Positions 8,357-62,015 of a stretch of 64,000 nucleotides of DNA are shown here, one piece after another. Under the pieces are notes generated by a model, which saw only the letters and a program-made list of their open reading frames with translations, was not told the DNA's origin and ran no database searches. A program made the position numbers and the translations under genes. The stretch is from Saccostrea echinata (taxonomy: Eukaryota): the NCBI RefSeq assembly GCF_033153115.1, contig NW_026889835.1, positions 2,046,001 through 2,110,000 of the forward strand, written 5' to 3'. Position 1 is the first letter of the stretch; each line of letters begins with the position of its first letter.

Positions 8357-8548
8357 CTACCTGCATGCACAAGAATTAACTGTCATACTTGGATAATTTT
8401 TCAGGACAACATTCCTATTTTCGTCAAAATAGAGAAGCGTCACAGAAGACATGGAATCGGGCACACAACAAGGGGCTGGTACATCGGTGTATATTCCAAT
8501 GGCGTGGACCATACTTTGTATTGTAGCGTGGTTTGAAGGTCTCAATCG
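8357..8548 (-). CDS. BMP3: BMP3 coding exon 3 (C-terminal cystine knot)
   Basis: Acceptor TTTTTACAG| at 8549; [14 protein letters not shown] then TAG. Confidence 0.95.
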
Positions 8549-59247: not shown

Positions 59248-62015
59248 GTATTTTATCTTATTTGTCACAGAAATGGTTTTTGAAATATTTATATATGTGT
59301 AACAGATTTTCTAATAACAGAGGAATTTCGAACGAAGAGAAAGCAGAAAAAGTAATGATTGACATCTCATTATCAAATTCAATTAAAATGCTCATTTTGA
59401 TCTAAAAACTGCAATTATTAACAACTGTTTGACAACCGTTGTCTAACATAGCATACATTTTTATTTGAGAGAAAGCACTGGGGTTGAATCAATCTACTCA
59501 TGGCAAATAGGTAAATGGAGCAAATCCATTCAGGGAGAACATGGAATGAGAGCGAAACCACTCAGATTAAAAAAAAGTTTAATGAAGCCAAATATGATAT
59601 ACAGTTGAACTTCAACATCTCGAACAATGATATCTCGAATACCATGGATATGTCAAACTAATTGGAAATCCCATCCACTTATTCTTTAAATATTTTACCC
59701 TCGATATGTCGTATCCTCGGATATCTTGAAGTTTTTTTTCAGTCCCATTAGGTTCGAGATAACGAGATTTTACTTTATCCCACCTCTGATGATTTTTCGA
59801 TGAAATCCTTGCTTCCGATTGGTTGAAGTCTGTCACGTAAAGGGGGTGTATTACTTATACCTAGTCGCTTGAAAATCAATACATGGTTGATGCGGAGTTA
59901 TCGTTCTTTTGTAACACTTCAAACAACTCGAGTTCACGAGGTTTGCGGGTGTCTGTTGATAAGTAAAAAGTTAATCAATGTAAGTAACGAGATGGAACCT
60001 TTTTCTCACTTTACTAAAAGTCTTCGAAACTGTCAGTACATTATGAAACACTCGCAAAACAACATTACGTAACACAACGTGACGTCATAATAGGCATTGT
60101 ATGATTGATGAAACATATAGCGGAGAAAAACAATTTTACAAACCACAGACCATAGACATTTCATCGGTGGGGTTAATTCGTTACATAGTTTTGTAGTGAC
60201 AGGGTACGGGATGATACCTGGTTAGTAAATTTCATACCTGGCTTGGCTTCGCCTCACCAGGTATGAAATTTACTAACCAGGTATCATCCCGTACCCTGTC
60301 ACTACAAAACTATGTAACTAATAGTACTAGAGTGACAGTGGCGTCAGTGTTGGGACCTAAAGATATCATGCAAAATGTAATATTCTTAATATTGCCTTTA
60401 AAATCACAATCACCACATACTGATAATTAGTAACTGTTATTTATTGATAATATCAAGTTTTCTAGATAATATTATATAAACGTGTTCATTCAGCAGAATA
60501 TTTTTGGATAAATATTTTTTCTTTTGACTTAAGGATCAAGAGCTTGCCAGGCAGGTCATTGAGCTAGGATATAAAGGCAGTGGAGGAGAAGTGCTAAGAA
60601 GGGAAGAATTTGAAGCCAGGAAACAGGCAGCTGAAGCCAGCAGACTTTCAAAGAGAAGTCAACAAAAGTATGTATTCTATAAAATTTAATGAATTACTTC
60701 ATTACACTCAATGATACTGAAATCTAATATTAGAAGTTTTGTGAAAATATTTTAATTTGTTTTATTGGTTTGAAGAACTTTAGCAAGTTCTGGGAAGGAT
60801 ATCAAGGATCCATTTCTTAAGGCCTTGGCAGAAAAGGAGGAGGCTAATAGAAGTGGCAAAATGACAGTAGGTATCCACAGATTACAAGAAAATAAATTTT
60901 AATCATGTGTTTTTCAACTGTGCATACAACAGTGTAGAAGCACTTGTCTGTATTCAGATACCTTTACCCAAATTAGTGAAATTACTTTTATTATTATTTT
61001 GTAGAGTGTAATATTCATTAGGGATTTCAATGCAAGAGGCCAAGAAATTTCTGGCTACATAGATTATGCACACAGACTGAAGACAGAGGACTTTGAGCCA
61101 TACTTTGCAGAGAAAAAGAAACTCTTACCAAGGCCATCAGATTTAAGGTAACAAGATTTTGAATGATTTGTAAGATAATAAGTATCCAAATTTATATATA
61201 TAGCTTATTTTCCCAGAAACTACATGTACAATATCCTGTGATTTAATGGGGCACTGGATTGTCATGTTGTATATCTTTCCACTGCAATTTAATGTGGAAA
61301 GCATAAGCTTTGATCCACATACATGTACCAGCAAATACTTTCATTGTGTAGACTGAAGTGACTGTATGCAATACCTACTATCAAACAACATTCCACAAAA
61401 TAAATAAAGTATATCACCTATATTATATGAAATGCAAACATAAGATCCCTCACTTATTGTATTGAAGTCACAGAAATGATATAGTGTCACATGCATTTAT
61501 TTCCAGCTTTTATAATTGGGAAACTCAGACTTCTACATCAAATCCTTCTCCAAACTATCTTGTGATGGCACAGAATGCTACAGGATTGATTTTCAAAAAC
61601 AAAAGGGATCGCAAACAGCTCATTGTAGATCCCAAGGTAATTTTTTTTTTATTTATCACTTACACTATTCAAGAGCTTAAAGGTTCTGTAAATTTATTTT
61701 TTGAAGTTTATTAAGGTTGATAATAATTGCATAATACATGCATGGGTAAACAATATTTATACAGTCTGAATAGGATTGGGAAACAAGTGATCCCTATTAC
61801 TACTATCTCCAAAACAATGATTATATAATTATCCTCCTTAATCTTCTTATGTTTTCTTAGTAGATGACAACTTGTCCCACTTGTTTAAATTATGATTAAT
61901 TCTGTTAATATTTCAGGCCCCCAACCCAGGAGACAATTCATACCGTTATGTGATAGAGACTCCCAAATATGTCCAAGTTGTTATATATGATCATATCACA
62001 AGAAGGAAAACATAA
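59140..62015 (+). CDS. CFAP299: Cilia- and flagella-associated protein 299 (C4orf22 orthologue), 234 aa, join(59140-59247, 60534-60667, 60776-60866, 61005-61147, 61507-61636, 61917-62015)
   Basis: [135 protein letters not shown] matches the CFAP299 family end to end. 705 nt; all introns GT-AG and in phase. Confidence 0.96.
59602..59775. mobile_element. Tc1/mariner(pogo)-type MITE in CFAP299 intron 1
   Basis: TA|CAGTTGAACTTCAACATCTCGAAC..GTTCGAGATAACGAGATTTTACTT|TA, i.e. imperfect TIRs with TA flanks. Confidence 0.7.
60180..60318. repeat. Perfect inverted repeat with 62-bp arms in CFAP299 intron 1
   Basis: 60180-60241 is the exact reverse complement of 60257-60318; 15-nt spacer CTTGGCTTCGCCTCA. 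Confidence 0.95.
60534..60667 (+). CDS. CFAP299: CFAP299 exon 2
   Basis: TTAAG| [20 protein letters not shown] |GTATGT. Confidence 0.93.
60776..60866 (+). CDS. CFAP299: CFAP299 exon 3
   Basis: TGAAG| [15 protein letters not shown] |GTAGGT. Confidence 0.93.
61005..61147 (+). CDS. CFAP299: CFAP299 exon 4
   Basis: TTGTAG| SVIFIRD..PRPSDL |GTAACA. Confidence 0.95.
61507..61636 (+). CDS. CFAP299: CFAP299 exon 5
   Basis: TTCCAG| FYNWETQ..IVDPK |GTAATT. Confidence 0.95.
61917..62015 (+). CDS. CFAP299: CFAP299 exon 6
   Basis: TTTCAG| [16 protein letters not shown] then TAA. Confidence 0.95.
   Translation, partial: APNPGDNSYRYVIETPKYVQVVIYDHITRRKT

Follow-up and report, generated by a model that had tools for sequence, protein, structure and literature searches.

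BMP3, a coiled-coil gene and CFAP299 in an oyster genome: a probably old three-gene neighbourhood

We here describe a 64,000-nucleotide stretch of the genome of the oyster Saccostrea echinata (G000:C86:2046001-2110000, from an assembly of 923 Mb in 425 contigs; 'the window' in what follows), in which three protein-coding genes were found: a BMP3/GDF10-type ligand gene, a gene for a coiled-coil protein and CFAP299. With a probability that we put at roughly 0.75, the window is an old neighbourhood of these three genes, and the adjacency of BMP3 and CFAP299 in human is its remnant. Ancestral linkage of BMP3 and CFAP299, taken by itself, is well supported.

How are the genes arranged? Read so that BMP3 runs from left to right, the oyster layout is CFAP299 (leftward), coiled-coil gene (rightward) and BMP3 (rightward). 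The start codons of BMP3 and CFAP299 lie 43.6 kb apart; CFAP299 is located 5′ of BMP3 and is encoded on the other strand. An earlier, sequence-only reading of this DNA had described a BMP3/GDF10 gene with CFAP299 about 44 kb off on its 5′ side; the gene models confirm this, and the limits it had set (8357 and 62015) coincide exactly with the stop codons of the two genes. Its description of CFAP299 as inverted relative to BMP3, with one gene in between, is likewise accurate (plus versus minus strand, with the coiled-coil gene at 30893-56625). The coiled-coil gene sits directly upstream of BMP3, on the same strand, and spreads its 557 codons across 26 kb.

To follow these genes into other species, two handles were used: an identical exact size of the carrying contig within one species was taken to mean the same contig, and accession numbers or locus tags stood in for gene order, along which they run in annotated genome submissions. 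The matches listed were the best 120 of 1598 for CFAP299 and the best 120 of 132 for BMP3; which matches were listed determined the set of comparable species, and the counts that follow hold for that set. Outside the window and one metagenome contig (L020, see below), the comparison speaks to co-location only, not to distance or orientation. On this basis, one contig carries both BMP3 and the coiled-coil gene in 17 of the 18 comparable species. These 17 comprise S. echinata, S. cucullata (139 kb), Pecten, Mizuhopecten (1.0 Mb), Ylistrum (3.0 Mb), Potamilus (1.14 Mb), Mya, Babylonia, Liolophura, Elysia crispata (0.92 Mb), Owenia, Ridgeia (0.60 Mb), Capitella (0.92 Mb), Lineus and three species of Branchiostoma; in six species the shared scaffold measures 0.14-1.14 Mb. 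Accessions of the two genes are consecutive in Mizuhopecten (OWF35161/OWF35162) and Branchiostoma lanceolatum (CAH1246379/CAH1246380) and 3 apart in B. belcheri, and the locus-tag gap is 7 in Potamilus and 10 in Elysia crispata. The coiled-coil gene and CFAP299 are found on the same contig in 21 of 23 comparable species, including scaffolds of 0.29-0.71 Mb in Lottia, Lingula, Saccoglossus and Ridgeia. BMP3 and CFAP299, finally, are co-located in all ten comparable cases (the window, L020, Ylistrum, Ridgeia, Owenia, Liolophura, one Haliotis assembly and three amphioxus species), and all three genes share one scaffold in Ridgeia (0.6 Mb) and Ylistrum (3.0 Mb).

The sequence-only reading had proposed that the linkage may go back to the bilaterian ancestor; an origin before the molluscs is supported by the ten co-located cases, L020 with its 3.4-kb distance among them. 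For the most part the neighbours recur in the other animals compared (17/18, 21/23 and 10/10), the exceptions being the distance in B. belcheri, and Solemya, Patella, Clavelina and possibly Mytilus galloprovincialis. Nor were the two genes found unlinked in most invertebrates among the comparable species listed, as a mere chance adjacency would have had it.

Independent material came from metagenome contigs, which were scanned with CFAP299 exon 4 and yielded 59 loci. Thirteen of these have the oyster-type CFAP299 exon structure, most others being intronless and probably derived from protists or transcripts, and two of the 13 animal-type loci (L020 and L025) hold at least 5 kb of flanking sequence. 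On L020, BMP3 (2860-5452) and CFAP299 (8833-11126) stand in tandem on the same strand, 3.4 kb apart. Between them, at 6913-8022 on the minus strand, lies an intact-looking 369-aa open reading frame (ORF) for a Mos1/mariner-type transposase (Pfam Transposase_1, HTH_48). By tree position, the L020 BMP3 groups with other sequences beside the clade holding the annelid Ridgeia, away from the molluscs.

What of vertebrates? We take human CFAP299 and BMP3 to lie on the same strand and CFAP299 of human and other vertebrates to be a very large gene. That the two are adjacent in human, as the sequence-only reading had stated, is in print: a Bmp3-Cfap299-Fgf5-Prdm8b-Antxr2 block is kept in human, turtle and zebrafish (turtle BMP-family paper, PMC9928969, section 3.3). 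One chromosome conformation capture (Hi-C) data set moreover places mouse Fgf5, Prdm8, Cfap299 and Bmp3 in one topologically associating domain (TAD; bioRxiv 10.1101/2020.05.06.080564). The vertebrate Bmp3-Cfap299-Fgf5-Prdm8-Antxr2 block (human 4q21) thus resembles the oyster locus in that BMP3 lies near CFAP299, both being orthologous to the oyster genes. It differs in that nothing stands between the two in the block as printed (PMC9928969), in that the oyster contig shows no FGF-family match, and in that the oyster has an extra coiled-coil gene which vertebrates seem to lack. Among the best candidates scored, neither FGF, RasGEF nor cNMP_binding families had a match on the 3.9-Mb oyster contig C86, so that the BMP3-CFAP299 part is all that the two blocks have in common. 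We found no main-text report of BMP3-CFAP299 or BMP3-coiled-coil linkage outside vertebrates, including in PMC3514665, PMC7530604, PMC8851819 and PMC9023564; the supplementary block lists of such surveys may well contain it.

The middle gene is itself widely distributed. Its exon 37611-37384, compared with 1.84 billion representative proteins, led to a family of proteins of about 560 aa whose source names ('trichohyalin-like', 'myosin-11-like', 'LAMA2') are uninformative. With a gastropod member as the query, 77 relatives were retrieved, plus the oyster protein P0219 (557 aa). Their hosts are molluscs, annelids, nemerteans, a brachiopod, a bryozoan, hemichordates, starfish, amphioxus and tunicates; no vertebrate is among them in one word-indexed search with 8000 candidates scored and two solved-structure searches. 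Twenty sequences from molluscs to tunicates align with a mean column identity of 50%.

The sequence-only reading had taken the third gene as the mark of a local rearrangement. This interpretation is not supported: judging by consecutive accession numbers or locus tags, the coiled-coil gene adjoins BMP3 in amphioxus and scallop, and CFAP299 in a unionid, a gastropod and an annelid, and since it connects to both partners, it is not evidence of rearrangement. Its tie to CFAP299 is close in the oyster, where the two genes diverge from 5′ ends less than 1 kb apart. The coiled-coil exon is seen up to 58759, the CFAP299 start codon is at 59140 and CFAP299 contigs begin at 59145, these 5′ limits being contig ends rather than mapped start sites. 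Splice evidence stems from contigs of four public runs (at most three samples from two studies), and the joint from 56646 to 58652 occurs in the same four runs as the CFAP299 joints. In the unionid Sinanodonta, the gastropod Batillaria and the annelid Dimorphilus, the two genes carry consecutive locus tags. This is reminiscent of conserved bidirectional-promoter pairs, given that the oyster genes diverge from at most ~380 bp, are both spliced in the same runs and have consecutive tags in three other species; in contrast to such pairs, the oyster genes are known from layout and transcript presence, not from expression levels. Judging from the layout, the two genes probably form a cilia-related pair under common regulation. 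They may have been kept together because splitting them would cut a shared promoter, which would be reason enough by itself.

The simplest history would begin with BMP3, the coiled-coil gene and CFAP299 as neighbours in an early bilaterian, and the oyster would retain all three. Two ties probably hold them together. One would be a common stretch of at most ~380 bp from which the coiled-coil gene and CFAP299 are divergently transcribed; the other would link BMP3 to the coiled-coil gene, directly downstream of which it lies, and would still be present in amphioxus and scallops. The most likely cause of this second tie would be BMP3 regulatory DNA that overlaps either the body of the coiled-coil gene (26 kb) or its 3′ flank. 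Regulatory overlap is favoured by a small margin only over plain inertia in genomes that rearrange slowly, an explanation of nearly the same likelihood. In vertebrates, the middle gene would apparently have been lost, which would have left CFAP299 next to BMP3 as a consequence. Amphioxus would have kept the pair of coiled-coil gene and BMP3, with CFAP299 moving off along the same chromosome; in the unionid, gastropod and annelid the coiled-coil gene would have stayed beside CFAP299, and the organism behind L020 would have retained BMP3 beside CFAP299 without the middle gene. A bolder version, which we regard as doubtful, has the BMP3 landscape interwoven with a promoter-sharing cilia gene pair since before the protostome-deuterostome split. 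The presumably large vertebrate CFAP299 could then be an expanded remnant, and the 15-kb spacer and 26-kb coiled-coil gene of the oyster could contain the ancestral BMP3 enhancers in compact form.

The comparison with human presupposes that the ligand is BMP3. In a search of solved structures, human BMP3 (2qcq) comes out on top with 167 bits, and 69 of the 104 positions agree when counted along the alignment; BMP7 and BMP2 come next at about 122 bits, and BMP7, BMP2, BMP6 and GDF5 together span 104-122 bits. Window exons were searched one by one. Among the matches listed for exon 2 that are stronger than E 1e-19, the named ones are BMP3, BMP3/3B or GDF10-like, horseshoe crab and amphioxus included; hypothetical or uncharacterised entries aside, the one departure is an Elysia protein named BMP2. 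In the reciprocal direction, caecilian BMP3 finds two window exons in the whole genome (identities 61% and 44%, 83 + 67 bits), compared with 39% identity and 120 bits for the best other locus. The mature-domain intron follows ...CPFPLTK in the window ligand and occupies the same position in the L020 BMP3; vertebrate BMP3/GDF10 presumably has it too. A brachiopod genome paper handles bmp3 as a normal single-copy spiralian gene (PMC13121700).

Trees support this identity, though not decisively. A first ligand tree, with all 16 other paralogues of the same genome included, gave no resolution because very long branches attached inside the BMP3 group. A rebuilt mature-domain tree left out the 12 divergent own-genome rows (L004, L006, L007 and L009-L017) as well as Ridgeia, Saccostrea cucullata (the same as the window protein) and a B. 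floridae row (the same as B. lanceolatum); vertebrate ADMP, BMP2/4 and BMP5-8 sequences were in neither tree. It placed 27 of 27 BMP3/GDF10-labelled rows, the window protein included, on one side and six other ligands on the other, with support of 89/95 for the split and its presence in 86% of 200 bootstrap trees. Against this stands an approximately unbiased (AU) test on 108 mature-domain columns, which does not reject a grouping of protostome BMP3-like rows with ADMP-like rows (p 0.238); the mature domain alone is accordingly not decisive for BMP3 orthology. Both genes are the orthologues that the sequence-only reading had named; the evidence is clear for CFAP299 and, for BMP3, good though short of decisive, a recovered clade standing next to an alternative that the AU test does not reject.

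Might the ligand then be ADMP-like, or a lineage-specific BMP, which would void the comparison with human 4q21? Besides the AU result, this would be in line with P0088, a protein with the source name 'BMP2-B-like', tying with vertebrate BMP3 in matching exon 2 (86 bits each). P0088 and its scallop counterpart P0097 are what we take, from their motifs, to be ADMP-like rather than BMP2 or BMP7, a provisional label. Yet BMP3 leads every other solved ligand by 45 bits, the BMP3 group is supported as monophyletic (89/95), amphioxus and horseshoe-crab BMP3-like proteins outscore every paralogue, and the reciprocal caecilian search agrees with BMP3. Moreover, the mature-domain intron that is common to the window and L020 is absent from the ADMP-like paralogue, and amphioxus BMP3 has the same coiled-coil neighbour. 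We consider this alternative very unlikely, and the window ligand very probably the BMP3 orthologue.

As to the cause of the linkage, a genomic regulatory block, in which long-range BMP3 enhancers lie within or beyond the neighbours and selection forbids breaks, could be the main and sufficient one. BMP3 is a developmental ligand, expressed in blastula and dorsal ectoderm of a brachiopod (PMC13121700), its neighbours are functionally unrelated to it, and its adjacency to the coiled-coil gene, with the 557 codons of the latter stretched over 26 kb directly upstream and on the same strand, is retained from amphioxus to bivalves. Proximity outlasts changes of order and orientation between the window, L020 and vertebrates, as a regulatory block predicts, because distance rather than order would be constrained. 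Mouse Bmp3 and Cfap299 fall into one TAD in a single Hi-C reading (bioRxiv 10.1101/2020.05.06.080564), and microsynteny surveys ascribe many such pairs to cis-regulatory constraint (PMC3514665). Like the ancient microsyntenic pairs and regulatory blocks already described (Irimia et al. 2012, PMC3514665; Touceda-Suarez et al. 2020, PMC7530604), the oyster locus combines a developmental regulator with unrelated neighbours, and the linkage is kept while order and orientation change. A target gene linked to unrelated bystanders across distant lineages is what we find here (17/18, 21/23, 10/10 and L020), with several exceptions; unlike established blocks, the oyster locus is known by gene linkage alone, not by non-coding conservation or contacts. 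What fits poorly is the compactness of oyster CFAP299 (2.9 kb, introns of 108-1286 bp), which therefore offers little room for enhancers. The L020 pair, in addition, fits into ~8 kb with a transposon in the spacer, amphioxus has parted CFAP299 from BMP3, and the main texts of the two surveys (PMC3514665, PMC7530604) do not mention BMP3, GDF10 or C4orf22. A regulatory block as the sole explanation therefore appears to us possible but rather unlikely.

Several observations weigh against an old neighbourhood, or against its reach. Most of the cross-species evidence is indirect, identical contig sizes showing co-location and not distance, and RefSeq XP numbers are loosely positional: BMP3 and its direct neighbour are 115 apart in S. 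echinata itself. Six of the ten contigs shared by BMP3 and CFAP299 are whole chromosomes of 18-96 Mb and attest to the same linkage group only, and in B. belcheri CFAP299 is ~575 accession numbers away from BMP3 on the same chromosome. BMP3 and coiled-coil contigs differ in size in Mytilus galloprovincialis, where they possibly come from separate assemblies; those of the coiled-coil gene and CFAP299 differ in Patella and Clavelina, and the corresponding tags in Solemya are 381 apart. Order and orientation are unlike in all three arrangements known in detail (oyster, L020 and vertebrates). On L025, neither BMP3 nor the coiled-coil gene was found within 7-8 kb of CFAP299, and the coiled-coil gene was seen in 0 of the 59 metagenome CFAP299 loci. 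The apparent absence of the coiled-coil gene from vertebrates derives from one word-indexed search with 8000 candidates scored.

These breaks and shifts would be expected if early bilaterian neighbours simply had not yet been parted, without selection save perhaps on the promoter-sharing pair. The linkage has been broken or stretched repeatedly (CFAP299 in amphioxus, Solemya, Patella and Clavelina), numbering is distant in Babylonia and Liolophura, order and orientation vary, a transposon has entered the L020 spacer, and the lack of FGF, RasGEF and cNMP-binding matches on the 3.9-Mb contig leaves but a small remnant in common with vertebrates. Such neutral persistence is harder to reconcile with close linkage in molluscs, annelids, a nemertean, hemichordates, amphioxus and vertebrates (scaffolds below 1.2 Mb or consecutive accessions), as more than 500 million years of random decay would usually leave less; we regard it as possible but rather unlikely. 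Adjacencies of separate origin in oyster and vertebrates, by chance or convergence, could be argued from the differing orientations and the gene that intervenes in the oyster. The odds that any one pair of genes falls within a distance of two genes are about 4 in 30,000, with the gene number assumed, and a prior estimated to be of the order of 1e-4 already speaks against coincidence, as do the independent occurrence in L020, the three genes on one scaffold in Ridgeia (0.6 Mb) and Ylistrum (3.0 Mb), and the linkage of the middle gene to both partners in many phyla. Coincidence is thus extremely improbable, and an old neighbourhood of BMP3, the coiled-coil gene and CFAP299 remains the preferred reading.

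Hundreds of ancient microsyntenic pairs are known, and one more would not in itself be surprising. Here, a two-gene coincidence becomes a three-gene neighbourhood with a readable history, and two possible causes of linkage, a divergent promoter and regulatory overlap with a developmental ligand, become separable within one locus of ~50 kb. The coiled-coil family, well conserved and paired with a cilia gene, is a candidate for a ciliary protein that is seemingly missing from vertebrates. Regulation of BMP3 is reportedly of medical and breeding interest (skull shape, eye traits).

Table 1. Coordinates of the three genes and the intervals between them (positions within the 64,000-nucleotide window).
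Feature	Position	Strand	Details
BMP3-like exon 3	8357..8548	minus	Acceptor AG 8550-8549 and frame; C-terminal 63 mature residues, TAG stop 8359-8357
BMP3-like exon 2	9351..10273	minus	Acceptor and donor read; most of the prodomain, polybasic cleavage stretch, first ~40 mature residues
BMP3-like exon 1, coding	15251..15527	minus	ATG at 15527, donor GT at 15250; signal peptide and start of the prodomain
BMP3-to-coiled-coil spacer, 15.4 kb	15528..30892		Between the BMP3 start codon and the coiled-coil stop
Coiled-coil gene ('trichohyalin-like', P0219, 557 aa)	30893..56625	minus	13 coding exons (tblastn of P0219 on the window)
Coiled-coil gene, 5′ untranslated (UTR) exon, non-coding	58652..58759	minus	Joint 56646 to 58652, CT..AC (= GT..AG on the minus strand), 4/4 runs
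Putative divergent promoter region common to coiled-coil gene and CFAP299	58760..59139		From 58759 to the CFAP299 ATG at 59140; at most ~380 bp
CFAP299 (DUF4464)	59140..62015	plus	Six coding exons, stop 62013-62015; PF14713 matches, five GT..AG joints
CFAP299 exons	59140-59247, 60534-60667, 60776-60866, 61005-61147, 61507-61636, 61917-62012	plus	Spliced contigs

The BMP3-like gene (8357-15527, minus strand) consists of three coding exons that sum to 463 codons. Its model agrees with P0001, a 463-aa protein named 'bone morphogenetic protein 3-like [Saccostrea echinata]' by its source, which is 100% identical over exon 2 and whose residues 1-92 match exon 1 at 100%; across the three ligand exons identities are 100%, 100% and 94%, the last value stemming from a high-scoring segment pair that overruns the acceptor. 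Pfam places TGFb_propeptide in exon 2 and finds the TGF_beta domain split by the intron, with profile positions 2-36 in exon 2 and 47-104 in exon 3 (E 2e-16). Read from the sequence, the last 104 residues contain seven cysteines and are preceded by an Arg/Lys run, so that all features of the class are present: signal peptide, TGF-beta propeptide, polybasic stretch and seven-cysteine cystine-knot C-terminus. The ADMP-like paralogue has no intron in its mature domain. The 15.4-kb spacer upstream of BMP3 holds seven ORFs of 75-102 aa without a Pfam family and no recognisable gene, and is a candidate location of BMP3 regulatory DNA. Elsewhere in the window, too, a Pfam scan assigned no family to ORFs of 74-102 aa outside the three genes.

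Other ligands of the same superfamily deserve mention. P0088 (G000:C10:5110245-5110550) and the Argopecten protein P0097, with the source name 'BMP7-like', have nearly identical mature domains and are the nearest non-BMP3 relatives of the window ligand; their source names, BMP2-B-like and BMP7-like, may be wrong. A locus at C22:1094774-1095346, where the TGF-beta domain is split at a similar place, was considered as a BMP3 paralogue and rejected on account of its double-cysteine start. Seven divergent TGF-beta-like mature domains occur in two arrays, three at G000:C19:1578607-1678772 and four at G000:C41:1916939-2019021; with two types of sequence among them, they resemble a lineage-specific expansion of short cystine-knot ligands. 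In Mya arenaria, one chromosome carries two BMP3-like proteins and two coiled-coil sets, whose accession numbers pair up closely; this points to a duplication of the BMP3-coiled-coil segment there. In Babylonia areolata, two coiled-coil paralogues lie on different chromosomes, only one of them on that of BMP3.

CFAP299 was recognised by PF14713 (DUF4464), which gives six exon-sized matches at 59176-62009 on the plus strand that cover profile positions 3-230 of 230. Its five GT..AG introns are confirmed by spliced contigs, one joint in three of the four runs and the others in all four. The model has 234 codons in a gene of 2.9 kb with introns of 108-1286 bp, and the 3′ UTR extends beyond 62100. 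From sponge to echidna, eight proteins of the family (233-235 aa) are collinear with it over the whole length, and named 233-aa CFAP299 proteins of scallop, limpet, sea urchin, amphioxus, frog and echidna align end to end. This is the only significant DUF4464 locus in the 923-Mb genome, one other match having an E of 0.6; the gene is clearly single-copy, and its orthology is for this reason unambiguous. A role in cilia or flagella is suggested by the family name alone. Within intron 1, at 59597-59660, the summed contig depth is very high in all four runs (up to 2186 in the 59598-59791 bin), and dozens of contigs continue from there, in both directions, into sequence that is not alike; the segment has the look of an interspersed repeat that is short, abundant and transcribed.

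The coiled-coil protein, finally, has resisted classification. Pfam assigned no family to it or to six relatives, solved-structure searches with a coiled-coil exon, full-length and profile queries returned no relative, and a protein atlas gave chance-level scores only (0.81). An identity of one exon as CFAP58_CC (Pfam E 0.004) was rejected, the CFAP58-type loci of the genome being on other contigs. With 948 aa and 1037 aa, respectively, P0258 (Capitella) and P0442 (B. belcheri) are nearly double the length of a usual family member (560 aa), probably because their gene models are fused with a neighbouring gene; no Pfam family was found in P0258. At the 5′ end of the oyster gene, one contig piece of the UTR exon extends to 58759. 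Its first intron contains, at 58371-58388 and ~270 bp from the first exon, the palindrome TGACGTCA twice, 10 bp apart, copies that we take to resemble cAMP-response elements. The same intron harbours a direct repeat of ~50 bp (...GAGAGCATTGCAAAGGGCTGTTTGGGTAAACTTTGTTT...) in two tandem copies at 57245-57350, and a further intron of the gene holds a minisatellite at 52467-52700, whose ORFs on both strands give repeat units such as TLYADIV and VSAYNVK.

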